From: Macrostomum lignano
Lineage: Eukaryota
DNA length: 64,000 nt
NCBI GenBank assembly: GCA_002269645.1
Contig: NIVC01003303.1
Span: forward strand, 41,123-105,122
Direction of reading: 5' to 3'
The notes under the pieces were generated by a model. The model did not search any database and was not told where the DNA came from. It worked only from the letters and a program-made list of their open reading frames with translations. The stretch's first letter is position 1, and each line of letters opens with the position of its first letter. The translations under genes were made by a program, and so were the position numbers. Shown piece by piece: positions 17,142 through 63,194 of this stretch.

Positions 17142-17859
17142 TCAGAACACCTTGACGAATCTGCTCCAGGCGGGGTCCTTCTCGATGGCGTCACCAACAC
17201 TGGAATCCGAGTAGTCCAGCATGCGGCAGAGCCCTGCGTCCGTGTTCACCAGAGCCGCCCGGCACTCCCAGCGGGAGGCGCACGCGTCCAAACAGGTGAA
17301 CTGCTCCTCGATCGTGATGTCGGTGTAGCAATAAGTTGGCGTGATCTCCCCCAGCTGCAGGAACTCGGACCGTTTAAACACGCCGCTATTCGGGGTCTCG
17401 ATCGGCTGGCACAGACAGAGCTTCGTCCCGCCAGACGTGGCGTCCATGATTCCCGACTGCCGAATCGCCAGTCCGTCGTCGCTATCGTTGATGTCGTCTG
17501 GACAGTCGTCCGACCAGTCTTCGTCGCCGAGCACGGGGAACTCGGTGCCGTTGGTCATCAGCCAGCCGGTTCTGTTGCGGTACCGCTCGACCAGAAAATC
17601 GGTGCCGCCCAGCCACAGCAGCCTCGGCCACAGGTGACGAGCAGCCCGCGCCCGCTCGATCCCGAGCGCCAGCTCTCCGTTGATGCCGTGGCAGAACCTG
17701 GCCGCGTCGCACCATGCAGGTCCTCTTGATGTCCGAGAGGTTCCAGAACAGGCAGAATCCATTCAGAGTGGTGTAGGGCGGCGGGCAAGCGAACAGAGGG
17801 TAACTGCAGATTACAGCAAATGCGAAGCTTGCAAAGAGCAGGAGGCCTTTCTTAGCCAT
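17142..17859 (-). pseudogene. Single-exon secreted C-type lectin + PAN/apple protein with a 4-bp frameshifting insertion at ~17714-17718
   Basis: Signal peptide MAKKGLLLFASFAFAVIC; CPPPYTTLNGFCLF, then after removing 4 nt TWCDAARFC...LWLGGTD...W...PDD...KLCLCQ (CTLD); C-terminal TCLDACASRWECRAALVNTDAGLCRML (PAN). The two ORF-track frames overlap at the insertion. Confidence 0.8.
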
Positions 17860-26014: not shown

Positions 26015-28820
26015 TGTCGGATTTCCATCCTCCAAATATTTGTACTTTCTATTACCTTGTACTTTTCAGTTAACCGTCTCCCTTTGTCTACCATGCCTTT
26101 CCCACAGACTATCGTAACCGTTCATTTACCACAGACAATTCAGCTGGCCTGTTCATTATTGTTAGTATAAATACAACTTCAACCCGCGGCTTAGGCCCTT
26201 CACTTCTTCTTTCCCCTCCTTCCTTTCTGCACCACTAATCACATATTGTTAGTTGTTAGTTTATTGTCTATTCGACAATTCTGGTAGCAGAGCGTGGTTC
26301 CAGCAGTCGGAGAATGACCACCTCTCAGCCTCTGCTGAAGCGACCACTGCCGCGGAGCAGCCACCCGCCGAAAGCAGTGACCCGCTGCCAGCCGCTTCGT
26401 CCGCCACGACATCCGCTCCTCCCGCTGCTCCGTCCTCAGCTCCGATCCCTGCAACAGCTCCCACTGCCTCCGTCGACGTGAACGCCCTCATCGCCTCAAT
26501 GACTGCGATGATGCAGCAGAACCAGCAGCTCATTCAACAGCTTGCCGCCACCGTCCGTCCAGCCTCAACATCAACTGCCTCAACGCCCGCATCAGATGCT
26601 CACGATCCGGCCGGGCTCATCCGCTCCACCATTCTCAAGAACGTACATCTCCCGATCTTCGACGGTACGGACCCTGCTGCATTTCCGGGCTTCTGGGACG
26701 CCTTCGTCTACCGCGTTGACCGCTCCAGCCTCAACGACGTCGACAAATTCGAGGCGCTTCGCGGTCTGCTCTCCGGCTCCGCTCTCAAGAAGCTCGGTGC
26801 CCTCAATGCCTACCAACCCAACGCCTACGCCGAGGCCTGCTGTGTCCTCCAGGCCAACTACACCGACACACAGGAGCAAAAGAACGCCTCCTTCCAGCGT
26901 CTCCTCGCCCTTCACTGCAACTCTGCCTCCGACATAGACGAGCTCGAGACCTACACCGACGCCCTCCGACTCGCTACCGGCCAGCTCCTCCGCCTTGGCG
27001 AGCCCGCCAGCACCATGGACGGCTACGTCTACGCCCTGTGGAGCCGCCTCCCGATCGAGCTGCAGAGCGAGATCCGCAACCTTCGTGCTGCCAACGGGCA
27101 GCCTCTCATGCCAACTATGACACAGCTCCAGTGCCACCTCGATTACAAGCTGAAGACGCTCAGAGCCGCTTCCGCTACCCCTCCGGCTGCGACCTTCGCT
27201 TCCGCCATCCTTCTGGGCAACGCCAGTTCCCAGCCGCCACAAGCCCGCAGCACCGGCAATCGCTTATCGTCGGACGCCTATCAACCTGACCCCGCTCCTT
27301 GCGCCGACATTAAATCTCGCCCAGCCGCGAAGTTAAGTTCCACTGCCAGCCAAGAGCCCAAGAGTTCTTGTCCCTGCAGCGACGCCAGTCAGCCTATCAG
27401 CCCTAACGTACCTGCCCAAGCGCTTCGAACGACTCTCAAAGCCTGCCCGACACCCTTCAGGGCCATCCTCGACGGCTCCCTCGATACCACAGCCTCTCGT
27501 CTCAACGGCTTCCTCGGCTCCTCGCAAGTGGTCATTGCGAACACTTTCCCTAACAACGATGGGCTCCACCTCGACCGACTTCTGGACAGCATGTCCAACC
27601 TCGAAGCTCTCGGCACGGCAAAGGATGCTGAACGGCCCGACGCCAGGAACGACAGACCCCAGGAACGCCTGCCCGACTCCATCATGCGCGATACCGACGG
27701 TCGAATCTCCGTCGACCTGCCATTCGAACCTGGAGCCGAACTCCTACCTTCCAACTTTGGCCAGGCCTTCGGTAGTGCTCAAGCCACACACCGCCGCCTC
27801 AGCCTTCCCGAGCGCGAGGCCTACTACGCCGAGTTCGAGAAGCGCAAGCAAAAAGGTGTCCTGGAACGAGTCAGCCCTGGCCAGCCAGCTGGCCCAGTCA
27901 TCCAGACTCTGCCGCACTTCCCAGTCATAAAGGAGAGCTTCAACACGACGAAGATCCGCCCCGTCGTCGACGGCGCTACACTCGACGACCTCCTAGAGCC
28001 TGGGCCCAACCTTCTGACCTCAATGCTTCAAGTCTTACTAGTTCACCGCGCTCACCGGTTCAGCATCTCATCTGACCTCAAGGCCGCCTTCTACCAGATA
28101 GGTGTTCACGAGCCTCACCGCGACGCCCTCCGCATCATCCTTCCAAAGGATATCAACAAGCCGCTAGTACAAGGCAACTTCGAGCTCTGGCGCTTCACTC
28201 GCATCGTCATGGGCGCCTCTCCCAGCCCGTGGATTCTCTTGGTGGTCCTCCACAAGATCTGCTTGGACGCAATTAACTCTGGAGATTCCGACCTCACCCG
28301 ACCCGAGCTCGAGCGCATCATCGGCGGCCTCTACGTCGACAACCTTGTCATCGGCGCTGACACCAAGGAAGATGATGCCCGTCCCGTCTGCCGGCTTGGC
28401 TTCCGGCCCGGAATTATTGTTGCACCTGACTAAACATTTTACCGTTTCCACGAACTAAAATCAATGCGCAAATACTCGCTTTTAATCATTCTACTGATTT
28501 TACCATTCAAAATCCCCTCTATCTTATCGTTACCTGTTGGCCCCCCGAGCCTGTCGGATTTCCATCCTCCAAATATTTGTACTTTCTATTACCTTGTACT
28601 TTTCAGTTAACCGTCTCCCTTTGTCTACCATGCCTTTCCCACAGACTATCGTAACCGTTCATTTACCACAGACAATTCAGCTGGCCTGTTCATTATTGTT
28701 AGTATAAATACAACTTCAACCCGCGGCTTAGGCCCTTCACTTCTTCTTTCCCCTCCTTCCTTTCTGCACCACTAATCACATATTGTTAGTTGTTAGTTTA
28801 TTGTCTATTCGACAATTCTG
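26015..28820 (+). mobile_element. Internally deleted Bel/Pao LTR retrotransposon with identical LTRs
   Basis: 263-bp TG...CA LTRs at 26015-26277 and 28552-28814, identical by eye; PBS TGGTAGCAGAGCGTGGTT (initiator tRNA-Met type); no RNase H or integrase; no TSD. Confidence 0.92.
26253..28433 (+). CDS. Bel/Pao gag (DUF1759-like) plus RT N-terminal part, truncated just after the YVDN motif
   Basis: LPIFDG...FWDAF...DKFEALRGLLSGSA; GRISVDLPF; LPHFPVIKE...TTKIRPVVDGA; GPNLL; SDLKAAFYQI; FTRIVMGASPSP; LYVDNL. The true start is probably downstream of the LTR. Confidence 0.88.
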   Translation: MLVYCLFDNSGSRAWFQQSENDHLSASAEATTAAEQPPAESSDPLPAASSATTSAPPAAPSSAPIPATAPTASVDVNALIASMTAMMQQNQQLIQQLAATVRPASTSTASTPASDAHDPAGLIRSTILKNVHLPIFDGTDPAAFPGFWDAFVYRVDRSSLNDVDKFEALRGLLSGSALKKLGALNAYQPNAYAEACCVLQANYTDTQEQKNASFQRLLALHCNSASDIDELETYTDALRLATGQLLRLGEPASTMDGYVYALWSRLPIELQSEIRNLRAANGQPLMPTMTQLQCHLDYKLKTLRAASATPPAATFASAILLGNASSQPPQARSTGNRLSSDAYQPDPAPCADIKSRPAAKLSSTASQEPKSSCPCSDASQPISPNVPAQALRTTLKACPTPFRAILDGSLDTTASRLNGFLGSSQVVIANTFPNNDGLHLDRLLDSMSNLEALGTAKDAERPDARNDRPQERLPDSIMRDTDGRISVDLPFEPGAELLPSNFGQAFGSAQATHRRLSLPEREAYYAEFEKRKQKGVLERVSPGQPAGPVIQTLPHFPVIKESFNTTKIRPVVDGATLDDLLEPGPNLLTSMLQVLLVHRAHRFSISSDLKAAFYQIGVHEPHRDALRIILPKDINKPLVQGNFELWRFTRIVMGASPSPWILLVVLHKICLDAINSGDSDLTRPELERIIGGLYVDNLVIGADTKEDDARPVCRLGFRPGIIVAPD

Positions 28821-37094: not shown

Positions 37095-37921
37095 TCACTT
37101 GTTGGACACGGAGATGCGGCTGAACAGCAGGCCGAACGACCTGCAAATCGGTCCGCACACGCAGTCGGTGACGGAGACGCAGCACTCCCTGTAGACCCCC
37201 GTGCAGATCTTGAACAGCTTCATGCTGGGCGTGATGCACCAGATGTTGTTATAAGCTACGATAGCAAAGGTGCAGCCCCAGTACAGAGCAATGCACAGGC
37301 CAGTGAGCACAGTGAGCAGTTTGTAGCAGCAATTCTTGCCGCCATTGTAGCACCGATATGAGTTGCGCCACACGCAGTCGATTGAGTGCGCATCGTCCGG
37401 CTCAGCCAGGACGTCCTCGAAGCCGACCTGCGCGGAGGTCAGTGAAATGTGTGTAGCACACGCAGACAGAGAGGCCTAAGGGGGCTAGTTTATAACGTTG
37501 ACCAATGGTATCAACACAAGGACCACCATAGAAGTTACCGTTGTATTAGGACGTAACACTCGCAAATATTGCCGATTCATTTGAAGGCCCGCTTGTTTGC
37601 GTTTATTTAGCGATGCTTGCCTTCAAAAAGCACCCCTTTAAGCCTGAGAAGCTATAGAATAGATACATGTACAATGGTAACTTCTAGTGGTCCTTGTATC
37701 GGCAATTAAATGGAAAGACGTTTCAACTTTTCAGCATCGAGTTAAAAAACCGTTCGGAAAATCCAAAAATAAATTTTTGAAGCCCGGGAACTTTCCATAT
37801 ATTTTGCTATCAAACACTTGCGCTGACCAACCTTGAGGTATGCATTGAGTCCGTTCGGGTCGCGGTTGACCATATCCAGGTCGGAGTCGTCGCTCCTGCG
37901 TGAATCGTTGTCTCGGCCCAT
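37095..37921 (-). CDS. Caveolin A, 140 aa; complement(join(37832..37921,37095..37427))
   Basis: MGRDND...DMVNRDPNGLNAYLK|VGFEDVLAEPDDAHSIDCVWRNSY...KNCCYKLL...IWCITP; caveolin signature FEDVxAEP; phase-0 GT-AG intron. Confidence 0.93.
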
Positions 37922-40063: not shown

Positions 40064-40585
40064 ATGGCCAAGGAAGGCGAAGAAGCCAAGGTGGAAGTCG
40101 ATCTGGTCAACCGCGACCCCAACCAGCTCAATGGTCACCTGAAGGTAAGCATAGAATGCTCAAATACGACTTCACACCTGAGCATAGTTACTCACCCATA
40201 CCATGAGCCGCATTCTAACTGACCCATCGGCAACTCTCCCACAAACCTGCAGGTCGCCTTCGAGGACGTCCTGGGCGAGCCGGAGCACGCGCACTCCATC
40301 GACTGCTTGTGGCGCAACTCCTACGGCTGCTTCACTGGCGGCAAGAACTGCTGCTACAAGTTTGTCAGCGTCCTGTCGGGCCTGTGCATCGCCCTGTGCT
40401 GGGGCTGCACCTTCGCTATGGTTGCCTTCTACAACATCTGGTGCATCACGCCGTGCACCAAGGTCTTCAAGATCTTCATCGGCGTGTTCAGGGAGATGTG
40501 GGAGACCTACTGGGACTGCTGCGTGGGCGCCGAGTGCAAGGCCTACGGCTACTTCTTCAGCAGGGTCAAGGTCCAACAGGGCTAG
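40064..40585 (+). CDS. Caveolin B, 137 aa; join(40064..40144,40253..40585)
   Basis: MAKEGEEAKVEVDLVNRDPNQLNGHLK|VAFEDVLGEPEHAHSIDCLWRNSY...; 108-bp phase-0 intron. Confidence 0.94.
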
Positions 40586-41136
40586 ACTCTTGCCAACTGC
40601 TCGCAAGGCGGCCGCATGGAGTCTGGCAGCTTTGATAACTGTAAAAACACCAAACCACCAATCGAATTCCTTAATTAAGATATTTATTAGCTAAACTCGA
40701 ATTTACAGCCAATTTGTACCTTGCTATTTTTGTAACTAAGTACGAACCCAATTTTAGCGGCAAAGACGCGACGTGGGCGTAGAGTTGGCGGTCTTCATTA
40801 GCGACCATAGTGTTCTATAGTTCCAAGCTGATTTTTACTGATTTTTTTTCCCAAGAATTGACAAATAAACTAATTAACTACACAAAAATCCGTAACTGAC
40901 TCAGAGGTCGCTCCTAAAGTACTTTCAATTAAATTTATTGTTTTGTCAGCGTTCTTTAATAACTATTAATTCTTATCAAAACGGTTCTTATTGGTTTAAT
41001 TAAAACATAATTATACGGCATGCAGTAGAAAGCATTGAGCCCCTTACTAATAAAATGGTATTAAAGATCGATATTAATTTAGAGAAAGGAACAGGCCTTT
41101 GCAACTTGTATCACGTCAAAAAGCAAATTAAAAAAA

Positions 41137-41363: not shown

Positions 41364-41785
41364 GTTTTTTTCTAAACAAATTGTCAGGCCAGACCTCGAA
41401 TTTGCTTGAATATCCTAATATTTTTTACAAATTGCTTTTAACAGCAAATTCATCAAAGTCTAACAGTTAATTAGTTCGTTCTAAAAGCTAATCCTTAAAA
41501 AGTAAGACAGGATCTTATAAGAAACTCAGTGTTATCATAGTGTATTTGTATTGAAAATATCAGTTTTGATAGTAAGAAAACTGCTAAGATATGGTTAAAA
41601 AAACATTCAGTGGTCTTCTGCTGCAATAGAAACAGTCTTGAAAAAAGGACAGCAAGATAGACGGCTGGAAAAATCGGTACAAAAATCTGGTACCAAATCA
41701 AATCAGGTTGTTGGTAATCACAATCAGCAAGACAGAGTTAAGCCAGAGTAAATTAGTTTTCCCAAATCTTGCGGAGACATGCAGC

Positions 41786-42310
41786 TTATTTGCCCTGCTC
41801 CACCTTGATCCTGCTGAAGCAGTAGCCGAGGGCCTTGCACTTGGCGCCCACGCAGCAGTCCCAGTAGGTCTCCCACATCTCCCTGAACACGCTGATGAAG
41901 ATCTTGAAGACCTTGGTGCACGGCGTGATGCACCAGATGTTGTAGAAGGCAACCATAGCGAAGGTGCAGCCCCAGCACAGGGCGATGCACAGGCCCGACA
42001 GGACGCTGACAAACTTGTAGCAGCAGTTCTTGCCGCCAGTGAAGCAGCCGTAGGAGTTGCGCCACAAGCAGTCGATGGAGTGCGCGTGCTCCGGCTCGCC
42101 CAGGACGTCCTCGAAGGCGACCTGCAGGTTTGTGGGAGAGTTGCCGATGGGTCAGTTAGAATGCGGCTCATGGTATGGGTGAGTAACTATGCTCAGGTGT
42201 GAAGTCGTATTTGAGCATTCTATGCTTACCTTCAGGTGACCATTGAGCTGGTTGGGGTCGCGGTTGACCAGATCGACTTCCACCTTGGCTTCTTCGCCTT
42301 CCTTGGCCAT
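41786..42310 (-). CDS. Caveolin C, 138 aa; complement(join(42230..42310,41786..42121)); inverted near-identical copy of caveolin B
   Basis: Same exon 1, identical 108-bp intron; diverges only near the C-terminus (…AKCKALGYCFSRIKVEQGK). Confidence 0.94.
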
Positions 42311-47700: not shown

Positions 47701-50700
47701 GAATGGAGAATTGGGACACTGAGAATGGAGACCCGGGACACTGAGAATGGAGAATTGGGACACTGAGAATGGAGAATTGGGACACTGAGAATGGAGAATT
47801 GGGACACTGAGAATAGAGACCCGGAACACTGAGAATAGAGACCCGGAACACTGAGAATGGAGACCCGGGACACTGAGAATGGAGAATTGGGACACTGAGA
47901 ATGGAGACCCGGGACACTGAGAATGGAGAATTGGGACACTGAGAATGGAGAATTGGGACACTGAGAATGGAGAATTGGGACACTGAGAATGGAGAATTGG
48001 GACACTGAGAATAGAGACCCGGAACACTGAGAATAGAGACCCGGAACACTGAGAATGGAGACCCGGGACACTGAGAATGGAGAATTGGGACACTGAGAAT
48101 GGAGACCCGGGACACTGAGAATGGAGAATTGGGACACTGAGAATGGAGAATTGGGACACTGAGAATGGAGAATTGGGACACTGAGAATGGAGAATTGGGA
48201 CACTGAGAATGGAGAATTGGGACACTGAGAATGGAGACCCGGGACACTGAGAATGGAGAATTGGGACACTGAGAATGGAGAATTGGGACACTGAGAATGG
48301 AGAATTGGGACACTGAGAATGGAGAATTGGGACACTGAGAATGGAGAATTGGGACACTGAGAATGGAGACCCGGGACACTGAGAATGGAGACCCGGGACA
48401 CTGAGAATGGAGACCTAGAAGACTGAGAATAGAGTTAGGGACACTGATAATAGACTCTAAGAGTTAAAAGGACACACAGAAGGACTCACAGCCATCACAG
48501 GCCCATACTCAGGCGGCCCATAATAAGATCTGGGGAATCCTCTGCCGCGACCGCCTCGGCCACCGCGTCCCCGGCCAGACTGGCGATCCGCGGCATAGTC
48601 GCTGCCCTTGACGGCGGCACCGTCCGGCCCAGTAACATTGGCAGCCTCGTGGCCTTTGGCGCCTTGGACAACGTCGAATTCAACAGATTCGCCGTCGCCA
48701 ACGCTGCGCTGAAATTTCTTAGGATTGTTCTTGATAATGGCAGATTGGTGGACAAAGATGTCTTCTTTGGTGTCGGCTCGGTTGATGAAGCCGTAGCCGC
48801 TCTTGACGTTGAACCATTTTACTGTGCCGCTGACCTTGGTGGCTGGCGGGGTCAGGGGCGAGGAGTGGAGTTAACAAATAAAAAGTATCCCTTGTACTTT
48901 AATTCAAATCAAAATATTCAAGATAATTCAAAATAAAAACGTGACTTTGCTCAAACATACATGCGCAACCTCTAAAATTCAGTCAGCCGTGCGACTTAGC
49001 TTTAGCAAAAATGCGACGTAGTTTTTGGCCAAAAATGCGACTTACATGTAAAAAACCCTAAAGCAGAATTAACGCAACTTTGAGTAAACGGCAGGAGTAA
49101 CTATGACTGTCTTATTAAGTCAAAATGCCTCGTCAGCTACTTAGTACTCCTACTTCGGTGTTTTTTCGGTTGGGCATTTTTGCGACTTCCTTGGTTGGCC
49201 GCCAAATCGGTCGGCCGGATCGGCTGACTCGGCCGACTGTTGCGCATGTATGTGCTCAAACCCTTAGCTTATTATATTAGCTATACACATAAGACAGTTA
49301 GAGATGCATATTTTCGCCTAGGTATGGTATATGCTACTATGCTGAAAGAGTTCAAAATCCTCTCCAAATCCTTTATGAAACCTCTCAAATCGCAAATATT
49401 GTTATCTCTGTTTGCAAAAATTGACTGCCATTGTCTAGACAAAGATTCTCTTTTGCCTCCTCTCTCTTCTTTGTTCTCTTATCTCTAATCTCTCCTCCTC
49501 TATGCTCTCATCTCCACACTCTTACCTATCATCTCTTATTTCTGCACCCTCATCTCTATTCTTTTATCTATTGTCTCTCTTCTACCCTGTCTTGTCTTAT
49601 CTCTTCTTTCTCCTATCTCACATTGGCAACTTTCTAAAATAGACTTTATTTTTTATTTCTATAGGACCAGAAGCCCCTAACATTGGAAGAATTAAGAACC
49701 ATTTAGAAAGAGAAACTATCTCAGAAATAGGCTGAGTGAATAGCCTTAGGTTAGGAGTTTAGCAATCTCAAGCTCTTAGGCCACATGTACCCTGCAGAGC
49801 ATTTTTATCTAGCCTTTGGGTCCTTTTAAACTTTATAATAGCAATATACTTTGCTTTTAGGAAGTTTAGAGTGGCTGTGAAGTTTAGAGTTTTGTGCCTC
49901 TTCTTAGCTTCCTTCTTTCTGATCTCATCTTCTCATTTCTCCTCTATCCTTTTATCTCTCTTCTCCTCTATCTTTTTCTCTTTCTTTTCCTTTCTCTTCT
50001 ATCTTTTTTTTCTCCTCTCCTCTATTCTCTATCATCTCTCTCTTTTTTCTCTTTCCTCCTCTCTTTTTTACCCTTTTTTCTCATCTTTTTTTTCTTTTAC
50101 TTCTCTTTTTCTTTTCCACACTCATACTAGGTTTTTTATCTGGCCTTTAAGGTAAAAAAGTTTGCTAAACTCTGCCTTAGACAATAAAAATCTATTGTAT
50201 TAGAGCTGACTCCCTGATCCTAGGAATGCTAGAACAAGAGCTTTCAATAAGGAGTAATTTGAACTAATTAGAAAGATATATACATTACTAATAAAAGCAT
50301 TATAAAATAACTTCAATTTAGCTATTAATTTAAAGTATGATAAAAAAGTTCTATTATTAGCACTTTGGTCTGTTTTTTTACATTTTTTTAATAGGCCTAA
50401 GAAAAAATATACTATAGGAGTTGATGCCATTTGAAGTATATAAATTCATAATTGTTTTTTTTCAATTTTTGTTATATATTTTTTGCTATTTAATATATTG
50501 TCATTGATCTTAGATTTAATATAGGCCTAGTGTTGAGCTTAGATGCCTATATCATTTTTAAGACCAAACAGTTCTACACATAATATAATAGTAGGCCCCC
50601 CTGAATACTAGCAAATTGTCTTAATTCTTCTTAAGGTATTTTATAATGAGTTTGTATTTCAACTTAAAAAAATGAAAATGCATGTAAAATTTAGGGTACT

Positions 50701-50998: not shown

Positions 50999-51384
50999 CC
51001 TGGACTCCTAGCCAAGATGTTAAACCCACACAGATATTGGATGGTTTCTGCACTCAATTCGAGCTGTTAACACACACTGTAATTTAATTTGCTATAAGGT
51101 CAAGTACGCTTACTTGTGCTAATTTGAAAATTCACAGGCCTGTTCACGTTGTTTTAAGAAAGATAAAGCATACCCATTATCTATCTGCTAAGTTAAAATG
51201 CTTGTTTAAAAATTCTAATTTTAAATGTTTTAATATTATCACTAAGCTTGAACCTTCTTGCTTTTAAAAACGAAAAAGTACGATGACGCTAAAAATACAA
51301 TTTTGAGAAGAAAGCGTGCTTATAGTTAAGAGCAAGCAATGACCGGATTTTCAGTTCCACGTTCAGTTCCACGAAAATAAATAA

Positions 51385-52330
51385 ACAAAAAATCAAATGC
51401 ATACTACAGTAAGGAAAATCTTTTTAAAATTAAACTAATAGCATTTTTGCAATATAACATCTGAGTAGAATTTACACCAAAAATATCTTTTCAATTGAAC
51501 ATCTGTGAGCTTCGTGGCACACCTCGAATGCTGAAATGGAGTGAATTTTCTTTAGAATTTACGACGTAGATGGTGACTGTACAAAAAAATCAAATGCATA
51601 CTACAGCAAGGAAAATCTTTTTAAAATTAAACTAATAGCATTTTTGCAATATAACATCTGAGTAGAATTTACACCAAAAATATCTTTTCAATTGAACATC
51701 TGTGAGTTTCGTGGCACACCTCGAATGCTGAAATGGAGTGAATTTTCTTTAGAATTTACGACGTAGATGGTGACTGTACAAAAAAATCAAATGCATACTA
51801 CAGCAAGGAAAATCTTTTTAAAATTAAACTAATAGCATTTTTGCAATATAACATCTGAGTAGAATTTACACCAAAAATATCTTTTCAATTGAACATCTGT
51901 GAGCTTCGTGGCACACCTCGAATGCTGAAATGGAGTGAATTTTCTTTAGAATTTACGACGTAGATGGTGACTGTACAAAAAAATCAAATGCATACTACAG
52001 CAAGGAAAATCTTTTTAAAATTAAACTAATAGCATTTTTGCAATATAACATCTGAGTAGAATTTACACCAAAAATATCTTTTCAATTGAACATCTGTGAG
52101 CTTCGTGGCACACCTCGAATGCTGAAATGGAGTGAATTTTCTTTAGAATCTACGACCGAGATGGTGACTGTACAAAAAAATCAAATGCATACTACAGCAA
52201 GGAAAATCTTTTTAAAATTAAACTAAAAGCATTTTTGCAATATAACATCTGAGTAGACTTTACACCAAAAATATCTTTTCAATTGAACATCTGTGAGCTT
52301 CGTGGCACACCTCGAATGCTGAAATGGAGA
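51385..52330. repeat. 197-bp tandem repeat, ~4.8 copies, upstream of the Y-box start
   Basis: AATCAAATGC anchor at 51391, 51588, 51785, 51982, 52179 (period 197). Confidence 0.95.
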
Positions 52331-52339
52331 GATTTCTTC

Positions 52340-54160
52340 CTGCTTTTTTATCTGTTGTGGAGACGCATCGTTCGCCACAGCGGCAAAAAACACCTGAGCT
52401 TGTTTGGCAACGCTGGCGACCTCAGCCTCTTTTTCTCGTCTGTTGAAAGCACAGAAAGAGGTGGGTTCAAGCGTTGACAGCATATTGAAGACCGAGATGC
52501 TGACTGTGTCTGCTGACGTATCAGCGGACCTGACATGCCACGACGCAGACGCACGCTGCCAGCAGTGGTTCATCACATCAGCGGTCTGGTGCTCCGTGGA
52601 GAAAAAAACCTTTCATATGAGGAGCCAGGCCCGAACCCATTGATCAATCCAAACTAGATGTACACGTATAGCTGTTCTACGTGTTCTCTATACACTACAT
52701 ATACTTTTTGCAATCTGAACTGTATGTCATCACAGCCTTAAAAGATCCCCTGATAAAAATCCGTCTGTATGATCCCGGAGTTCTCGATTTGTGCCCAAGC
52801 AGATTCCTATCAGCTATTCGGCTGCATGCTGCTCACCGCTAGCTCCAACCCTTTGATACCCATCCCAGGCGGGGCTCCGGCCTCGCCAGGTCTGGTCATA
52901 CCGTAGATCCAGGTTCGCCAGGTCACAGAGTGGTGGCAGCCAGTGGGTCATGCAATAACCCAATGATCAATATTTGCACCTTAGCTATCGATGGGGCACA
53001 TTTGGGTCCTTACCGCGTCTCTAATATAGCACTACCAAAAAGTTATCAATATGCATGGGCGGGACAACCTGAAGGGCGATCTGTCGGTCATAGTCTGGTC
53101 ATAGACGGCTGGCAGCCATCCATAGTCATACGATCTGATCCTTCCCCATGAGAAGACGGTTCACTAGTAGGGCGATTACATACATGTAAATCATCATCAG
53201 TTCGACACTTCATCAGGAGTTCTGCATGGCGACACTTTGGCGCCGTTTCTCTTCGTGCTGCTGCCACTGGGTGCTTCGGACCGCAGTCTCCTCGGCTAAC
53301 GACGGCTTCCTGCGCTGCGCAGACGCATCGGTCGCCGCCAAGGTGAAAAGCGCCTTATTATTATTTGCTTGGCTACGCCGACGAACTCGCCCTCCTGTCC
53401 TCGTCCGTTCAAGGTGGCATCCCGCCAGATCGACAGGTTGGTCAAGGTGGCATTGAGCGTCGGACTGGTTGTCAACACGCTAAAGACCTAGGTGCTGACT
53501 GTGCCGGCCGACATCCCAGCGCTAGCGGACCTGACATGTCGCCTCGCAGACGGGCAGATGACCACGCTCGCGCGCACGCTACCAGCGGGATCACCTACTC
53601 GGCGGTCTGGTGCCTCACGTGGACGGACCTCGATCCGGCGGCGCCGAGGACTTGCCTGGGCGGCCTTCCGTTCGATCCGAGCCGACGTCCAGTCCGAAGC
53701 GCTGCCCGACCGCCAGAGGGCTCGTCGGCTGTGGCAGGCGGTGTGCTCTACAACGCCGAGACGTGGACACTGACGGCTACGCTTAGAGCGGCAGCTGGAC
53801 TCGGCGCATTCAGGGCTGCTCCGTGCGACCTTTCGAGCTGATGAGAGCGTCGGGACTGAGGCCCTGTACGATCGGGCCAAGCTGCAGCGCCCGTCCACCA
53901 TCCTGCGCCGGCGGCGACTTCAACTGGCGGGCCACGTACGTGATCCGGGCCGAGGGCTACTGCCCCCAACCTGTTCAGGACGTCCTAGCCCTGTTGCTCA
54001 CTCTGCAGGGCCCGCTCAGGCGGGGTCAGGCCCAAACCCGTCGATACGTGGACTGCCTCCTACGTACGCGACGCCAGGGCGCCCGACACTGCCAACGGGG
54101 CGGACTTCCTCCGCTCTCAGGCTCTGCGGCGCGCCATCTGAAGCACCCTGCTCTGTGACT
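52340..54160 (+). mobile_element. RTE-like non-LTR retrotransposon remnants (RT C-terminal part, frameshifted; two overlapping-homology fragments)
   Basis: LGYADELALLSSS, KT(E)MLTV present twice (~52490 and ~53485), AWAAFRSI, LYNAETWTLT, QLAGHV. Confidence 0.75.
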
Positions 54161-54630
54161 TAATTGATTGCTAGCTGCATAATTTGTTGTTAAGTTGTTG
54201 CTGTTATGAGCTATTAACTTTTACTGTGTATATTTTTTTATTCATTTAAGTAAAACAATTAGTTGAAACAAGTTATACTTCATGTAGTCCCAGGTAATTT
54301 TTTTATAGTCTTAAGAGTAACTAAAAACTAAAACAAAGTTCATCTACGCGTAAATATTTAATACCATCATTATAGAGTGACAGTTTTGCTCAGCAAAAGA
54401 CATTTAAGCATGACTTTTAATGCTTATATTTTATTTTTATGAGGTTAAATTTTCAAAGAAAGTGCAGATAAATTAAATATCTTTTTAAATTATATAATTA
54501 TATATACATGTAAGTAAAATTAAAATTATAATTATAATTATAATATGTAATTAATATTATAATTTTATATTAAAATATAATATAATTATAAATTTATATT
54601 GAAGAGAGGGTGTGTAAGGAAACTTTCGTT

Positions 54631-54811
54631 CAGTAGTGCAACCAGAAATTTTATGAGGGGGCGGATTCTGGAGGGTAAAGTCCCGGGAGGTGGGGCGGAC
54701 GGGGTGGCTCTGTTTTGGCGAAAATTCGCTTGGTCCCCCTTTGATTTTTTGGGTCTCCGCGCCTATAAGAGGGGGGCGACCGCCCCCCGCCCCCACCTGG
54801 TTGCGCCACTG
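54631..54811. mobile_element. Possible small MITE
   Basis: Imperfect TIRs CAGTAGTGCAACCAG / CTGGTTGCGCCACTG around a GC-rich island in AT-rich DNA; TSD not convincing. Confidence 0.5.
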
Positions 54812-55111
54812 CCTTTGCCTTAGTGTATTCTCATTCAAAGCACTTCGAAAGCAATGTGCTTATTGAATTTCGTGTGGATAAGTTTCATATGCGCGCTAAA
54901 ATGACTGACGAAAAAAGTACAATAAAATGTAAAACTATCAAAAAAAAATATAATTTAAATATTTATTGCAATGGCAATGCTTTTTTATTTGATGTTTAAG
55001 TGAAATTGGAGCAGAAATGTTTTTACTTTGTTTATACACTAACTATTTAGAGGCAATCCGGAGTGAATTAATTTAAATTTCGGAACTGAACCGAGAACCG
55101 AAAATCCGGTC

Positions 55112-58100
55112 ATGAGCAAGCAAGTGTGCGCACGCGCGCGCAGACAGTCCAGATCGTCGAACTCATCTATATATTCATTTGACTTCAATTGTCCGAGCTA
55201 CATCAGTATCCGCTATCGGGCATGCTTTTTAAAAGTTTCAGTTTTTTTGACGGGGCTCTAAATAAATGAATATAATTTTTTTGGATATAAGTATTAGGCG
55301 GAACATCCGAACATGTTCATAAACAGATGCTTGTGTTTTGCGGTATAGAGTATTTTGAATATTGCGAATAGAGAGTCCTATGTATTCACGAAATAAAAGT
55401 ATCTTTGTGTAGGGCCTAATCATTAGCTTTTTAATTTTACGATTTTCGATTACTTTTTTGTGAACTTTAAAAACAAGGAACTAAAATTATCCAAGTAGCA
55501 TAGTCATAGGGAATAGGCTAGCTGAAAAAATAGTTTCTATACTTTACTTGATGCTTAAAAGTCACGAAATTTAAAATTTCAAAGATTGATAAAATTATTG
55601 ATTCTTGACATTTTTTGTTAAATTTTTTTATATTTAACTCAGTTTAGGTCTAATATTCTAAGTTTTTGGACTTAAGTTAAAGTCTTCTAGCAATATAATA
55701 TAAAATAAAAATAGGCAGAAAACGAATAAATGTATTCCTATTGCTAAAAACTATAGCTTAATCCTTTAAAACTTTAAAAATTATATAAGTTCTGTTTCTA
55801 TAGATATAGAATGTCATTTCCATTTAATAAAACATATTACTTGCTGATAATGATAATATAATTTTTCAATGAATTCAAAACATCTGTTTTATTCAAAAAC
55901 TTAACTGCTTTCAGTATCAAACCCAACAACTAGCTGATAGCCTGCAACAGGCTATCAAAAATGGTAGCACTAAAAGTGCTTTTCATCTTGTAGACCAGCT
56001 ATGCCAGATTCCTTGTCAGGTATGTATCTACCCAGAGAAATCCCAGCATCAGTTCTTATCCAATCAGCAGCAAGCGGCTCCTCAGATGGTTGTGGCGGTG
56101 ACTCTGCAGTCTCGAGGCGGTCATCTCAGTAGAAAAATTCGACTCTGTCTACCAGGAGGCCCAGCTTCCACCATTGCCGACCTGAAAGAGCAGCTTCTAA
56201 TCAATTTTGGTTTGCCTATCGCCTCCCAATGTTGCATTGTTAATCAGCAAGTTCCAGACGATTTGGTTACTCTGGCTAATCTTGCTGAACAGTCCAGATC
56301 TGGTCAATTATTTGGCATCGAGGTTCTTGTGTATCTGCAGCCACCGCCTCCGGTGAAGGACCATGGGCAAGACAGGTTGGCCAGCGAGACTTGGGCCCCG
56401 CCTACCGAGGAGAGGCTGGCTCAGATTCGGCTGGAGGTTCAGAGGAAGCGAGAAGAATTGATTGCAGCGGCGGAAGCTGCTGCTGCAGATTTTGCTTTAG
56501 AAGATTTCGAAAATCAAGTCCAAGAGGTGAGATTGAGTGAAACTGTAGTCTGTTTCTAGGTTTAACGCTGTTTTCGTATTAAGACTGGGCTGCTACCCGC
56601 CACCCTCCCAGATCCTCAGTTGCTGAGCCAGCCTCCCAGATCCTCAGTGGCTGGGCCAGCCTCCCAGATCCTCAGTTGCTGGGCCAGCCTCCCAGATCCT
56701 CAGTTGCTGGGCCAGCCTCCCAGATCCTCAGTTGCTGAGCCAGCCTCCCAGATCCTCAGTTGCTGGGCCAGCCTCCCAGATCCTCAGTTGCTGGGCCAGC
56801 CTCCCAGATCCTCAGTTGCTAAGCCAGCCTCCCAGATCCCATATCAAGCTACTATCCCTAGCAGCTCGGTAACTAAGTCGATTTATAAGCCGAGTCGCAT
56901 TTTACAATCCAATTATTTATTTCTCATTCGTAGTTTTTCTTTCGAGGCGAAAGTTCAACTACTGGCTAAAACTTGGGTTAAAATAGCGGTTACAATATTT
57001 TTCTTCAACTAATCTCTGTTTGAATGGGTGCCAACAGGATACTGTGTTATTCACCTGAACCTAATAATGCTTTTATCTAATCGCTTTCGTTGCCTTAGCT
57101 ACTAAACTCTTTAGTTTGTGCGACTGTGGAATATACTTTAGAGGACTAGAAGCTAGTTTTTAGGGTAAAAACAGTTTTTTTCAAAAGAAAAAAGTTAATA
57201 AATTTATAAGTTTTCCTAATCCAGGACTGGTTTGGATTTGGAAATGGAAGATTTGGAAGTCCCATCATTGGGAATCATCTTGATCCCAGAATTAGAGATT
57301 TGAAATCCCATCATTGGACTTTGGGATCTTGATCCTAGAATTAGAGATTTGGAAGTCTCATCATAGGAGATATTGATCCCAGAATTAGAGATTTGAAATC
57401 CCATCATTGGACTTTGGGATCTTGATCCTAGAATTCGAGATTTGGAAGTCTCATCATAGGAGATCTTGATCTCATAATTAGAGATTTGAAATCCCATCAT
57501 TGAGGATCATCTTCATCCCAGAATTAGAGATTTAAAGATCCCATCATTGGGGATCTTGATCCCAGAATTAGGGGTTTGGAAATACCATCATTGGGGATCT
57601 TGGTCCCAAAATTAGAGACCTAGAAATCCCATGATTGGGGATCTTGATCCCAGCATTAGAGATTCGAAATTCCAATCATTGGGGATCTTGATCCTAGAAA
57701 TAGAGATCTGGAAATCCCATCATTTGGGGATCTTGGTCCCAAAATTAGAGATCTGGAAATCCCAAATTTGGTCATCTTGAATCTCCTGAACCGCAGCCGC
57801 ACTGGGAGTGTCCCACCTGCACTTGCTGGAACCCGATTCGTCGTCCAGGCTGTCAGGGCTGCGCCACCGACCGTCCAGCTGATGTTGACGCCGACTTGCT
57901 CGCCGCCTACGGTGATGAAGCTGACAAATTGGAGGCTGAGGTGGAGGACGACGATCCGGATAATGTGAGTGAGGGGGGAGCGGAGCGTAGGAATGTCGGG
58001 GGCTATAAGTTGGGTGAAGAGTGAAACTGTCAGTGAAAGAGTACCAATTTTAGAAGTGTCCAGATAGGGAAAAAGTGACCAGATAAGGAGGTGTGACTAG

Positions 58101-61100
58101 ATAGAGGGAGTGACCAGATAGGGAGGGAGTGACCAGATACGAGTAGAGAGGGAGCGACAAGATAGGGAGAAAGTGACCAGTCAAAACAGATAGGGAATGA
58201 GTGACTCTGTTATGGAAAGAGTGACCAGATAGGAAAGAGTGACCAGATAGAGAGGGAGTGACCCTGTTAGGAAAAGAGTAACTAAATAAGGGAAGGCGTG
58301 ACCAGATGGGGAGAGAGTGACCAGATAGGGAAAGTGTGACCCTGTTCGGGAAAGAGTGACCAGATGGGGAAAGAGTGACCAGATAGGGAGGGAGTAACCA
58401 GATAGGGAAAGAGTGACCAGACAGGGAAAGAGTGACTACATAGGAAAAGATTGACCACATAGGGAGGGAGTGACCAGATAGGGAAAGAGTGACCAGACAG
58501 GGAAAGAGTGACTACATAGGAAAAGATTGACCACATAGGGAGGGAGTGACCAGATAGGGAAAGAGTGACCAGACAGGGAAAGAGTGACTACATAGGAAAA
58601 GATTGACCACATAGGGAGGGAGTGACCAGATAGAGAAAGAGTGACCAGAGGGGGAAAGATTGACAGGCTCATGCGCAGGAGAGTCTGTCTGACCCATCCG
58701 CGCTCTCCTTCAGCCTGGCTGGCGCTGTCCGATCTGCACCTACAAGAACCCGCCCCACCGGCCGGGCTGTGCCGGGTGCGCAGCCGATCGACCGGACGGC
58801 TACGAGCCACCGGACGGCTACGAGCCTCCAGAAGATCCGGAGCAGCAGCGGCTGGAACAGCTGCTAGACCAGGAGCTGCGAGATCAGGCAAGAAAGAACT
58901 TCTTTAAATCGAACCGTTTTTATATAATTTCAAATAGCCGATATGTATCGAAAATAATATTTTTGCGAATCATTATGCGTTTGTGTGTGGCTGAAACGTT
59001 TGACTGGGATAATTGGACTATACGTAATGCTAGTATAATTTATATAAAAATATAGAAAATGATACAACTTGATTGCTACTTACTAAAAAATGGAAAATTG
59101 CTGGAAAAATGTGTTGTTCGAATCGCTTGAGATTCGAACCAAGGACTGACGGCTAATTTGAACTCTAACCATCGAAGTATAATGGCGTCTACGACAATTC
59201 TTAAAATTTTTCGAAGAGGAGTAAGTGCTACTTTAATATTTCACTTACCGACAACTACTAAAAGTAATATGATTTAGGGAAATAAATAAACATTTGGCTG
59301 TTTATTTTTAACTTTGAGTTGTAATTTTTTCAGCCGGGCTGGCTGTGCTCAAAATGCACGTACAAGAATGCCCCGTACCGACCGGGCTGCCAGGTGTGCT
59401 CAGCTAACAGACCCGCCGACTACAGACCACCTGCGGGTTACCAGCCACCACCCGAGGTGCTCGCTATGGAGCAGCAGCAGCAGAGAGCCTACCTGGAGAC
59501 TTTTGTTAAGGTAAGACTGACTTATCAAATTGTATTGAGAGATCATATTTTAATTCTTAGATAGTTATAATTCATGAGTGTTCAGATTTCCATAACTTAA
59601 ACTTTAAACCAAAACCCAAAACTCAGCACGAAACCCACAAGCCACAACCCTGCACCGAAACTCAAAACCCGGTACCAAAACCCACAACACAATATAGAAA
59701 CCCATAACACGATAAAGAAACCCACAACTCCATAAAGAAACCCACAACTCCATAAAGAAACCCACAACTCCATAAAGAAACCCACAACTCCATAAAGAAA
59801 CCCACAACTCCATAAAGAAACCCACAACTCCATAAAGAAACCCACAACCCGGTATACAAAACCAACAACCCGGTATACAAAACCCACAACCCGGTATACA
59901 AAACCCACAACCCGGTATACAAAACCCACAACCCGGTTTACAAAACCCACAACCCGGTATACAAAACCCACAACCCGGTATACAAAACCCACAACCAGTG
60001 TATAGAAACTCACAACCTTGTATAGAAAACCCACAATCGGGGTATAGAAACCCACACAAACTTAGATCTCGTAGGCTAACAAAGCCCGACCTCGGTGTGC
60101 AACCGCAGGAGAACCGGATGCAAATGGTCAGCCGGCAGTTCGACTGCGGTCACGAAGAGAAAATTTCTTGGTACGCAAATTTCCGAAGGATCAACAACCA
60201 GTTCTGCTCCAGGTGCTGGTCCATCGCCGCCCAGATACACAAAGAGAAGCTGGCAGGCGCTGGGGCTGATGAAGCGGGTGAAGTTAAGCGAACACCAGTC
60301 ACCGAGGACGATGAGGACACGGCTGTTGAGTACTTTAGGGTGAGCTCGGCCGCGTGCTGCAGGGAATTTACGACCAAGGATTCCAAGTGCAGTCACATTA
60401 ATTCGGTGCTAAATTGGAATCTCGGCTTGGCTCTGCCAACCCCCAAGGCACAGTGAAGTGTACATGCCTAACGATAAATAAAGTTAGGGCCGCTGTACAC
60501 TCCTGTGTGAGTGTGTGCCTGTGCGTATGACTGCGTACGTATCCGCGCGCTTGTATGCCTGCTCAGGGGAGTACAAGCCCCCGCCATCTGTCCCTAATAC
60601 CCAACTCCATCCTCATCTCCAAATCAGGACAAATCGTGAAATTGATTGATTATGAAATAGCAACATCCAAGTAGAAAAACTCGTAGCTCGTACTCTAAAT
60701 ATGATGAAGTTTTAACTATAGTTGGTGTGTGACTTCCTAGTCTAGGCTCGTACTTAGTTTCGTAAGTTTGTATTGCCACGAATTCTGCTTCCAGAGTCCT
60801 TCAATTTTCGTTATTAAGTTTGTCTGCGGACCAACCTAAAACCGAAGCTTCCAGACCGCTTCTTACTTGTATAAAGGACCACTAGGAACATTTTGTTATA
60901 GTATAATCGTTATCGTTCTTCTTCTCATTCATTTTTATTGATTGTCAATCTTATGGGAAAGATTTTAAAGGATATAGGCCAAACTATGCGGGTTCTGTAT
61001 GTGATCCCCTGGCTCAGTGGCTCCGATATATTTTTAGAACCGTCACTAACTACATGTCACTAAGGACACTACATAAGCATGCAAATGACACGTGCAAATG

Positions 61101-62133
61101 TACGTAGAATAAAAGATTAACATAGAAACCTAATTGTCTGAACGAAAAGCTTTAATAAATATCGATAGAGGAATAAGAAAGGCACAACATATCAAAAGAT
61201 GAACACTGGATCTGCCTCCAATCAAAAGCAATAACAATTTATGTGCTGAAAAAATGAAAACTTCCTATCCTATGTCCATAGTGTATTTTTCGGAAAAACC
61301 AGTCTCCTAAATTTTTTTAAGAAACGAAGTTTCCTGTCCTTCGACTTAAGTAGTCCTTGGGTAGTCCTTGACTTGTATATATCCCGGTAGAAACCTACAA
61401 ATCCATTTTCATTCCAACTTCTAACATTTTCCAAGCCTTAACTACTACTAGTAGTGTAAAAGCAAATCTGCTGAATAATTGGAAACATACGTCAAATACG
61501 CTAACTTTGGAATGATAAAAAATCATTCTGTAGACCACTAATAGTTAGGAACAATAGTTTCTTAAAAACACTCTTTTAACGACGCAACAAAAGTTCATCA
61601 CCCCCCCCCTCACCCGGGCACAGGTGCACGATCGGGTGATGCGCTACATAAAACCTGATCACTACATCAAGGTGGTGCAAGTGCAAAGCGTTGAACGCAT
61701 AGAAAACCCCGTATTAGACCAGCGCCTATTCGAATGCTACGATCAGTTGCAGAAGAAGAACTGCGTACCCGAACTGCTGTTCCACGGCACCCGTGGCGAC
61801 ATTGCTGAGAAAATCATCGCCGAAGGTTTCCGCATCGGAGGCGGTGGCATGTTCGGCGCCGGGATCTACTTTGCCACGGATACGACTAAAAGTGCGCAGT
61901 ACTGCCGAGAGAACGGCGTGAAATCCCTGCTCCTATGCGAAGTGGTGCTTGGCAAGACTATGGTGTGCAAAGCGGCTAGGCAGGATTTGAATTTGCAGGT
62001 GGTCACGGATGCCGGCTATGACTCTGTGTTTGCCAAACGGAACACCAATAACAATGGCGGGGTGGCCAATGATGAGTACATTGTGTACCGGCCTGAGCAG
62101 GCCACTCCGAGGTATCTGATCAAGTTTCAGTGA
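55112..62133 (+). CDS. HOIL-1L/SHARPIN-like (LTM-like, UBL, 3x NZF) fused to a PARP catalytic domain, ~627 aa; join(55112..55123?,55915..56526,57797..57964,58714..58887,59334..59510,60109..60339,61624..62133)
   Basis: All junctions phase 0 (one GC-AG donor at 58888). LADSLQQAIKNG...AFHLVDQL; UBL TIADLKEQL...FGLP...Q...TLANL...VYL; NZFs WECPTCTCWNPIRRPGCQGC, WRCPICTYKNPPHRPGCAGC, WLCSKCTYKNAPYRPGCQVC; PARP LFHGT, GGMFGAGIYFA, KSAQY, CEVVLG, NDEYIVY. The 4-codon first exon is tentative. Confidence 0.82.
56600..56840. repeat. 28-bp minisatellite (GCCAGCCTCCCAGATCCTCAGTTGCTG[G/A])
   Basis: Direct periodicity, intronic. Confidence 0.9.
57230..57775. repeat. Degenerate ~45-bp minisatellite (GATCCCAGAATTAGAGATTTGGAAATCCCATCATTGGGGATCTT-like)
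   Basis: Recurrent motif, intronic. Confidence 0.85.
58070..58660. repeat. 19-bp minisatellite (GAGTGACCAGATAGGGAAA) with a 76-bp higher-order unit
   Basis: TAGGGAGGGAG anchor recurs at 58460 and 58536 (4x19). Confidence 0.88.
59620..60058. repeat. 20-21-bp minisatellite (AAACCCACAACTCCATAAAG / AAACCCACAACCCGGTATACA)
   Basis: Direct periodicity, intronic. Confidence 0.9.
60385..60570 (+). mobile_element. SINE family 2 internal fragment (uninterrupted at the Bel/Pao insertion point)
   Basis: Reverse complement matches 25915-26014 joined to 28821-28930. Confidence 0.8.
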
Positions 62134-62289
62134 GTTAATTACAGTGTCTTTCTATATTTCGGATTTGTAATTTCTATTGTGTTCATTAAAACATTACAGC
62201 AAAGTTTTTTTTCTGTGAAGACTAAAATTGATACGCAATTACCTATTTTATCTTTCTGTTTAAACATTTTATTACGGCATTCTATAGTA

Positions 62290-62815
62290 CATGTATATTG
62301 AATGAGTGAGGGGTATTCTATTGTATTTTGCATGAGTAAGGGGTATTCTATAGTATTTTGCATGAGTAAGGGGTATTCTATAGTATATTAAATGGCAGGA
62401 GAGGGGTATTCTACTTATTGAATGGCTGAGGGGGGTATTCTACGAGTAGTATATTGAGTGAGTAAGGGGTATTCTATAGTATATTGAGTAAGGGGTATTC
62501 TATAGTATATTGAGTAAGGGGTATTCTATAGTATATTGAGTGAGTAAGGGGTATTCTATAGTATATTGAATGGCTGAGAGGGGTATTATATAGTAAATTA
62601 AATGGCAGGAGAGGTATATTCTACATATTGAATGGCTGAGGGGGTATTCTATAGTATACTGAATGGGTGAGGGGTATTCTGCAGTATATTAAATGGGTGG
62701 AGAGGGGTATTCTATTGTATATTGAATGGGTGAGAGGGGTATTCTGCAGTATATTGAATGGGTGAGAGGGGTATTCTGCAGTATATTGAATGGGTGAGAG
62801 GGGTATTCTATAATA
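62290..62815. repeat. ~32-bp degenerate minisatellite (GAGGGGTATTCTATAGTATATTGAATGGGTGA) 3' of the PARP exon
   Basis: Recurrent motif. Confidence 0.9.
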
Positions 62816-63194
62816 CATCAAATGGGGATTCGAGTTATAGTTATGTAGCATCCTCCTTTGCGGTTTCAACCCCTCTGCCATCGCTTATATGTCCTATGCT
62901 TCAAGGCTATTTATCCAGCCAGACTTTCTATTGTTATGACTGATTTTTTTCTATTGATCAGAAAAAATTCGTACGCCTAATCATGCTGAATTATCTTTGA
63001 GTTGATATTTTTTAAACAAATTCCCAAGCCGTTGCGCTTTTCTTCTTCTGCAAAACTTCCAAATATTTTCTACATTTAGTGTCGTGGCTAAAGACTTGCT
63101 GTTAAAATATATCTACGAGACACAAATTTTACCGGCAGTTAAACTGCTTCAATTAAAAAAATGTGTGCCTTACTATTGGATGCTTTTGTAGAAG

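Follow-up and report, generated by a model that had tools for sequence, protein, structure and literature searches.

A HOIL-1L paralogue of Macrostomum lignano that seems to have exchanged its ubiquitin-ligase end for a PARP cassette

The ubiquitin-like domains (UBLs) of HOIL-1L and SHARPIN bind the UBA domain of HOIP and relieve its autoinhibition, and the NZF finger of HOIL-1L reads Met1-linked ubiquitin chains. PARPs with ubiquitin-related modules are also known, such as PARP10 with its ubiquitin-interacting motifs (UIMs), PARP6/8 with UBCc, and fusions with U-box and UBA domains. PARP10 is a UIM-containing mono-ADP-ribosyltransferase that acts on NF-kB signalling. How the ubiquitin and ADP-ribose systems communicate is under active study, in work that includes tankyrase and RNF146, DTX3L with PARP9/14, hybrid marks of ADP-ribose and ubiquitin, and the UIMs of PARP10. 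To our knowledge, no enzyme unites a docking and reading module specific for LUBAC, the complex that assembles linear ubiquitin chains, with a PARP domain. The present study deals with a 64,000-nucleotide stretch of the flatworm Macrostomum lignano (the window; GenBank assembly GCA_002269645.1, contig NIVC01003303.1, positions 41,123 to 105,122 of the forward strand), to which all coordinates below refer unless a contig is named. A predicted gene on the (+) strand, at 55112-62133, would begin like HOIL-1L or SHARPIN and end in a PARP catalytic domain. Judged from its sequence, a HOIL-1L gene copy seems to have exchanged its ubiquitin-ligase end for a PARP cassette. The reading that we favour, with moderate confidence, is that of a single LUBAC-linked protein which combines a HOIL-1L-type module with a zinc-PARP cassette.

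Gene model and the HOIL-1L-type half

The gene model was rebuilt by script as seven segments that join in phase 0 throughout and give 627 codons with no internal stop. The six exons between 55915 and 62133, which an earlier sequence-only reading had joined in phase 0 free of stops, were reproduced in this way. Every acceptor is CAG. The donors are GTGAG or GTAAG, the sole exception being exon 4 with a GC donor (CAG|GCAAGA) in place of GT; the GC donor is kept in all three genomic copies of the gene. Exon 2 (55915-56526) encodes two LTM helices (about 55918-56004) and a UBL (about 56083-56340), with a long helix at about 56407-56523. It is followed by three NZF exons, namely exon 3 (57797-57964) with NZF1 WECPTCTCWNPIRRPGCQGC at 57803-57862, exon 4 (58714-58887; GC-AG donor) with NZF2 WRCPICTYKNPPHRPGCAGC at 58720-58779, and exon 5 (59334-59510) with NZF3 WLCSKCTYKNAPYRPGCQVC at 59340-59399 and a HOIL-1L-like tail (RPADYRPPAGYQP...) at 59409-59510. 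In exon 6 (60109-60339) a candidate zinc element with C-H-C-C residues, F-D-CGH...CSRCW (60139-60219), is separated by a linker from the initial half of a conserved pre-PARP helix (..TAVEYFR). Exon 7 (61624-62133) contributes the remainder of this helix (VHDRVMRYIKPDH) and the PARP catalytic domain, and ends with a TGA stop at 62131-62133. An ATTAAA, a candidate polyadenylation signal, lies 52 nt past the stop (62185-62190). Introns 2, 3 and 5 and the 3' flank carry tandem-repeat arrays (56599-56839, 57249-57764, 58055-58664, 59642-60056 and 62293-62826), all of them different, with periods of 28, 44/93, 19/57/76, 20-21 and 30 bp. Since these arrays vary, the lengths of the introns differ among the three copies.

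In a search of PDB sequences with exon 2 alone, the LTM-UBL of HOIL-1L (5y3t_A) was the best match, and a weak one (E 0.01). A profile built from five M. lignano paralogue families matched the same chain over positions 6-123 with an E-value of 3.5e-11, followed by SHARPIN (5y3t_C, 2.6e-10); the SHARPIN LTM peptide 8k6p_A was matched at 0.002. The AlphaFold model of exon 2 from a single sequence had a predicted local distance difference test score (pLDDT) of 46.7, which became 72 with the five-paralogue alignment, the LTM helices (2-15 and 19-30) scoring 81-87. A Foldseek search with the latter model returned the HOIL-1L chain of the LUBAC core, 5y3t_A, at the top (E 1.5e-9); further HOIL-1L and SHARPIN UBLs came next, with 5y3t_C in fourth place as the best match other than HOIL-1L. 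Two predicted N-terminal LTM helices followed by a predicted UBL are thus the order that is found here, as in HOIL-1L.

An exhaustive HMMER search of 1.84 billion representative proteins found a single specific relative of exon 2, the protein P0034 (E 5.8e-12, 40% identity, residues 2-128). P0034 is the M. lignano orthologue of HOIL-1L; it has an NZF and RING1-IBR-RING2, and matches human HOIL-1L (8eaz_A) at an E-value of 2.8e-68. Sequence comparison shows the N-terminal half of the gene to be a paralogue of the worm's own HOIL-1L. The HOIL-1L/SHARPIN-type LTM-UBL-NZF module, which had been proposed from the sequence, is therefore upheld by the profile, by Foldseek and by the paralogy with P0034. 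In the annotated P0034 protein the NZF segment is joined at ..SS|PPGW and ..FLEQ|. The limits of the three NZF exons in the window agree with these junctions (PPGW... / ...FLEQ|), which points to tandem exon duplication.

Pfam found zf-RanBP in the spliced protein, and the best PDB match of the fingers was the NZF of HOIL-1L/RBCK1 (E 6e-10). NZF3 alone matched 3b08_B at an E-value of 4.8e-11, in an alignment that runs through the tail. The ubiquitin-binding motif of NZF fingers is T-F/Y-x10-hydrophobic (PMC5135002). NZF1 retains the zinc ligands, the Thr and the Arg, with a degenerate ubiquitin-binding motif (T-C..G); NZF2 has T-Y and a Gly at the hydrophobic position (T-Y..G); NZF3 carries the full T-Y..V motif as well as the HOIL-1L-like tail. 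In HOIL-1L, Thr203 and Arg210 of the NZF are required for the binding of linear chains, which is abolished by their mutation (PMC8561004), and the equivalents of both residues are kept in all three fingers of the window gene. The claim of a triplicated HOIL-1L-type NZF stands as far as the number of fingers is concerned, while the full ubiquitin-binding motif is confined to NZF3.

HOIL-1L continues into RING1-IBR-RING2, and the proposal was that this RBR ligase is missing from the window gene. This was borne out: with the RBR of P0034 as query, tblastn detected no such domain in the window, nor in 23.6 kb of sequence that lies downstream of the gene's sister copy on C890, and no IBR was found on any of the three contigs that carry the gene (C3303, which is the window contig, C890 and C1332). 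An RBR exon lying just beyond the window was also considered, and was rejected within the range of this search. A SHARPIN-type PH domain was not found; the frame opens 14 codons before the LTM, and in the C1332 copy an ATG abuts the YQTQQ with which exon 2 begins.

The genome searches covered the M. lignano assembly of 764.4 Mb in 5269 contigs, and they revealed four further LTM-UBL-NZF families. Three of the four turned up in three copies each, and two of the four have an RBR. In two families (G000:C108:158162-158479 with 156107-156199, and G000:C4658:16817-18400) neither RBR nor PARP was detected, and these are possible SHARPIN-like adaptors that lack a PH domain. A second HOIL-1L-like RBR gene has one of these two immediately upstream of it.

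The zinc-PARP cassette

The C-terminal half matches the Pfam PARP family PF00644 at residues 455-626 (E 2.6e-25, 89.6 bits against a curated cut-off of 26.7). The catalytic His (61783-61785), Tyr (61867-61869) and Glu (62074-62076), which lie in FHGT, GIYFA and NDEYIVY, fall on the triad of tankyrase when aligned, and none of the three varies in the family alignment. Where tankyrase has its zinc-binding insertion, the alignment to 6qxu_A shows a gap. An H-Y-E PARP domain devoid of the tankyrase insertion, as had been proposed, is supported by the PF00644 match and by this alignment. The domain matches in the two halves of the gene far exceed what chance would give.

The same reading had called the domain tankyrase-like. 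One may ask if the protein could be a tankyrase that has diverged, or some other PARP of the classical metazoan kind, with NZF fingers gained later. Tankyrase-1/2 is indeed the best PDB match (E 2e-10), and GGMFGAGIYFA is common to both; the score of PARP4 is nearly equal (3e-10), Pfam found no ankyrin or SAM domains, and the zinc-binding insertion is missing. By far the nearest relatives are M. lignano proteins with 58-68% identity, whose N-termini are quite different, and next come proteins of cryptophytes and haptophytes at 36-45%. The likeness to tankyrase is generic, because the nearest kin are cassettes of the worm itself and then protist PARPs. Tankyrase orthology was rejected on the missing ankyrin, SAM and zinc insertion and on the closer cassette paralogues, and an origin from any classical metazoan PARP appears extremely improbable.

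The M. lignano relatives have in common an F-x-CGH...C-S-x-C-W element, a pre-PARP helix and a PARP domain, and their N-termini consist of coiled-coil or spectrin-like repeats, or of a helicase with NFX1-type fingers (ZNFX1-like). At least 138 PARP exon matches were found in the genome. By its sequence the PARP domain is a member of a large, M. lignano-specific family of zinc-PARP cassettes. The acceptor through which the cassette is entered is in phase 0 in every case, and its distance from the F is 6 residues in the genes of P0001 and P0003/4 and 10 in the window gene, where the acceptor is a CAG ahead of FDCGH. No Pfam family was found in exon 6, so that the zinc element is a call at the level of a motif. 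The join of exons 6 and 7 is well supported, because EYFR|VHDRV falls within a block that runs unbroken through every paralogue and through the protist homologues as well. Taken together, these comparisons show a locus assembled by exon shuffling from a HOIL-1L paralogue, which forms its 5' half, and a two-exon zinc-PARP cassette, the source of the latter being a large lineage-specific PARP expansion.

The family also includes larger fusions. At G000:C103:482015-487111, and at similar loci on C2210, C411, C446 and C1317, single frames of about 1,700 residues combine a helicase with numerous zinc fingers of the NFX1 type and a tandem pair of PARP domains, and can be described as ZNFX1-like-PARP fusions.

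Genomic copies, the 5' end and the joining of the two halves

The genome contains three near-identical copies of the gene, on C3303, C890 and C1332. The window contig stops at the end of the window. The C890 copy is identical to the window across 57965-62133, and it is for this reason uninformative for a test of selection. In both of these copies every exon is open and no splice site is disrupted. In the C1332 copy (G000:C1332:25311-30444, 62376-62879) exons 2-6 are in place, and the PARP exon is located about 32 kb further downstream; it is 95.9% identical and one codon shorter, with an open frame and the H-Y-E residues kept. The 32-kb gap could be a large intronic insertion, a rearrangement or a problem of assembly. 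Between the window and C1332, 8 of 1362 sites differ in exons 2-6 as against 74 of 3683 non-coding sites (Fisher p 1.4e-4). The divergence of the exons is about 3.4-fold below that of the introns, which is modest evidence of constraint.

The window copy differs from its sister on C890 by a copy-specific insertion of 3.77 kb (51340-55113), which has terminal inverted repeats (TGACCGGATTTTC... / ...GAAAATCCGGTCA) and a target-site duplication (GAGCAAGCAA) and is missing from C890. No Pfam families were found in its open reading frames. The sequence-only reading had started the protein with a four-codon exon, MSKQ, at 55112-55123. The ATG of this exon (55112) is made up of the last bases of the insertion and the GAGCAAGCAA target-site duplication, and at this site C890 reads TAAGAGGAAGCAA, without an ATG. 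MSKQ was rejected as the true N-terminus for this reason; as a by-product of a copy-specific transposon insertion, which the other copy does not share, it is no ancestral part of the gene.

The codon immediately ahead of the TAT at 55915 is ATG in C1332, CTG in C890 and CAG in the window. The M. lignano HOIL-1L paralogue begins a few residues ahead of the homologous QQLA..L motif. From the C1332 ATG and this matching start, the family start can be taken as M-YQTQQLADSL. Flatworm spliced leaders can donate the initiator codon; the leader of M. lignano ends in ATG, its acceptor motif is [T/C]TNCAG, and the published spliced-leader exon followed by GTAAG is present as 30 exact copies in the assembly. 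A TTTCAG that fits this motif abuts exon 2 (55909-55914), and the ATG of the leader would be in frame if added at 55915. It is probable that the initiator Met of the window copy is supplied by the 3' ATG of the spliced leader, which would restore the N-terminus of C1332 exactly.

The state of the 5' end bears on the question of whether the genome, being polyploid, carries in the window copy a duplicate that is decaying or silent. The architecture could then be evolutionarily real with this particular copy not translated as drawn. The change of the C1332 ATG to CAG in the window and CTG in C890, the transposon 0.8 kb upstream of exon 2, the separation of exons 6 and 7 by about 32 kb in C1332 and the absence of the product from every protein collection searched would all agree with such a history. 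It is opposed by the open exons and intact splice sites of the window and C890, by the lower divergence of exons than introns against C1332, and by TTTCAG together with an in-frame leader ATG as a possible working start. We consider a decaying or silent duplicate quite unlikely.

The critical junction is that between exons 5 and 6, where the HOIL-1L-type half meets the cassette. The donor of exon 5 is of consensus type (AAG|GTAAGA), and exon 6 begins at a phase-0 CAG acceptor. Where a donor is available upstream in cis, an acceptor should undergo cis-splicing rather than trans-splicing (PMC8629364). Intron 5 (59511-60108) is 598 nt long, about 415 nt of it tandem repeat, and is free of AATAAA and ATTAAA. 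Splicing in cis of this cassette exon to coding exons upstream of it is found in the genes of P0001 and P0003/4. On the logic of the splice sites the fusion join is likely to be real.

A number of observations weigh against the one-protein reading. After adjustment for the repeat, intron 5 is ~130 nt, a length which is also typical of operon spacers in M. lignano. No homologue spanning the exon 5/6 junction was found, and a word-indexed search of a collection of 5.8 billion proteins returned no transcript, protein, orthologue or junction-spanning fragment of the gene, so that none of its junctions is confirmed by RNA. In the word-indexed search the N-terminal region gave no matches, low-complexity words having probably filled the candidate list. 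Stand-alone PARPs of the family that lack the zinc element exist (P0012, 229 residues). The window copy (CAG) and C890 (CTG) are without a genomic ATG before YQTQQ, and the only copy with one, C1332, is the copy whose PARP exon is 32 kb away. NZF1 and NZF2 lack the complete ubiquitin-binding motif. An H-Y-E triad is no guarantee of poly-ADP-ribosylation.

Some of these points would be explained if the locus were two genes. The first would encode a SHARPIN-like adaptor (LTM-UBL and three NZFs, with a read-through of 17 codons into 'intron 5'), and the second a stand-alone zinc-PARP in an operon, whose exon 6 would be trans-spliced to the leader at 60109. About 15% of M. lignano genes are in operons, with repeat-adjusted spacers of ~100 bp, and intron 5 is mostly tandem repeat. 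Moreover, the phase-0 acceptor at 60109 would put the ATG of the leader in frame, short stand-alone PARPs exist in the family (P0012, P0014), and a paralogue family (famC, on C108) seems to stop right past its NZF; the missing homologue across the junction is in line with these. The consensus donor of exon 5 and the acceptor downstream of it in cis favour cis-splicing all the same, the intron holds no polyadenylation signal, the acceptor of exon 6 (CCGCAG) misfits the leader motif, and in the paralogues the cassette exon is joined in cis to exons that lie upstream. Two genes appear unlikely to us, though this view carries some weight.

Predicted function, neighbouring features and comparison with known systems

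A LUBAC-like partner is available to the one-protein product which we favour, since genes for HOIP-type UBA, IBR and LDD are present in the same genome. UBA_HOIP, IBR and LDD occur in one genomic locus, which is present as three copies. The host's HOIP and HOIL-1L, which the earlier reading had suggested looking for, are both found, the one as this UBA-IBR-LDD locus and the other as P0034. LDD domains of the HOIP type were found in no fewer than 32 places (contigs C691, C762, C110; C1573, C1037, C1484), and besides the canonical UBA-IBR-LDD locus they form tandem clusters of HOIP-like RBR genes. This suggests an expanded repertoire of linear-ubiquitin ligases in M. lignano. Both PARP and HOIP-like genes appear strongly expanded in this worm, beside the several LTM-UBL-NZF families, in a pattern that looks like an invertebrate innate-immune repertoire generated by exon shuffling.

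The following mechanism could be proposed. The exons would be cis-spliced to give one protein of ~624 residues, M-YQTQQ...LTM-UBL-NZF1-NZF2-NZF3-Zn-PARP. By analogy with HOIL-1L and SHARPIN, the LTM/UBL part may dock the protein on a HOIP-type UBA and/or on another LTM protein, and NZF3 with its tail may bind Met1-linked ubiquitin. The PARP domain could in turn ADP-ribosylate components of the linear-ubiquitin platform or ubiquitin itself. The protein would then be an alternative 'writer' subunit or a regulator of a LUBAC-like system, probably in signalling of the innate-immune type. In its full form, that of a LUBAC-type adaptor whose RBR is replaced by an active ADP-ribosyltransferase and which docks on HOIP, reads Met1 chains through NZF3 and modifies ubiquitin or LUBAC substrates, the proposal is tentative and rather doubtful at present. 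If it were true, linear ubiquitination would be hard-wired to ADP-ribosylation in a direct and genetic manner, and the LTM-UBL-NZF scaffold would be an exchangeable module by which various 'writer' enzymes can be delivered. An expressed and active protein would be a natural experiment on the effector chemistries that can be recruited to the linear-ubiquitin platform, and would suggest substrates for tests in mammals.

The remainder of the window contains other features. Exons of a MAP kinase kinase-like protein kinase lie at 1898-2332 and 4079-4477 on the (-) strand (Pkinase E 1.8e-24), and the introns of this gene are packed with tandem repeats. The long open frames of a Ty3/gypsy-type retrotransposon, with gag zinc knuckle, protease, RNase H and integrase, occupy 8618-12515 (+), and those of a DUF1759-bearing retrotransposon resembling BEL/Pao occupy 26253-28430 (+). 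A cysteine-rich open frame of 206 residues at 17145-17762 (-) has no Pfam match. Caveolin genes or exons are located at 37098-37475 (-), 40223-40582 (+) and 41786-42151 (-), the first two with Pfam Caveolin E-values of 5e-31 and 1e-29. An inverted duplication (40172-40690 / 41642-42202) takes in the second and the third. An exon of a Y-box / cold-shock-domain protein at 48460-48870 (-) (CSD E 1e-25) adjoins, on the upstream side, the region held in common with C890.

The architecture of the gene had been thought to be undescribed. No protein with LTM-UBL-NZF and PARP was found in the protein searches, which have limited reach for distant eukaryotic proteins, and no literature on this architecture or on M. 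lignano PARPs was found. The claim holds in the sense that no HOIL-1L-type module on a PARP was encountered, and has to give way in so far as PARP10 is a precedent for a PARP that reads ubiquitin. The domain architecture, as read from the genome, is real and unusual, and falls within the known theme of PARPs bearing ubiquitin-binding modules.

A comparison with HOIL-1L/RBCK1 shows the same N-terminal LTM helices, the UBL, an NZF with the T-F/Y-hydrophobic motif and the helical NZF tail R-P-x-x-Y-x-x-P-A-x-Y-Q-P. The window gene differs in that it is without RING1-IBR-RING2, has its NZF exon three times with two of the fingers degenerate, and ends in a zinc element and a PARP domain. SHARPIN resembles it in the order LTM-UBL-NZF and in having no E3 domain; unlike SHARPIN, the window gene has no N-terminal PH domain, and has three NZFs and a catalytic PARP.

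The catalytic triad of PARP10 is not H-Y-E. PARP10 likewise combines ubiquitin-chain-binding modules and a PARP catalytic domain in one polypeptide (PMC4245714, PMC12687431). Its modules are UIMs instead of UBL and NZF, it lacks a LUBAC-docking LTM/UBL, and it is found only in vertebrates; in the window protein no UIM was detected by Pfam. Tankyrase-1/2 is similar in the H-Y-E triad, in the GGMFGAGIYFA donor-loop region and in the C-terminal EY.VYR..QA.P.YLI, whereas the window protein has no ankyrin clusters, SAM domain or zinc-binding insertion and is not orthologous to it. The closest likeness in the C-terminal half is to the zinc-PARP cassette family of M. lignano itself (P0001-P0005), with which the gene shares the zinc element, the pre-PARP helix, the PARP domain and the phase-0 acceptor upstream. 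The N-termini of the other members are coiled-coil or spectrin-like, or consist of a helicase with NFX1-type fingers, and it is in its HOIL-1L-type N-terminus that the window gene differs from them.

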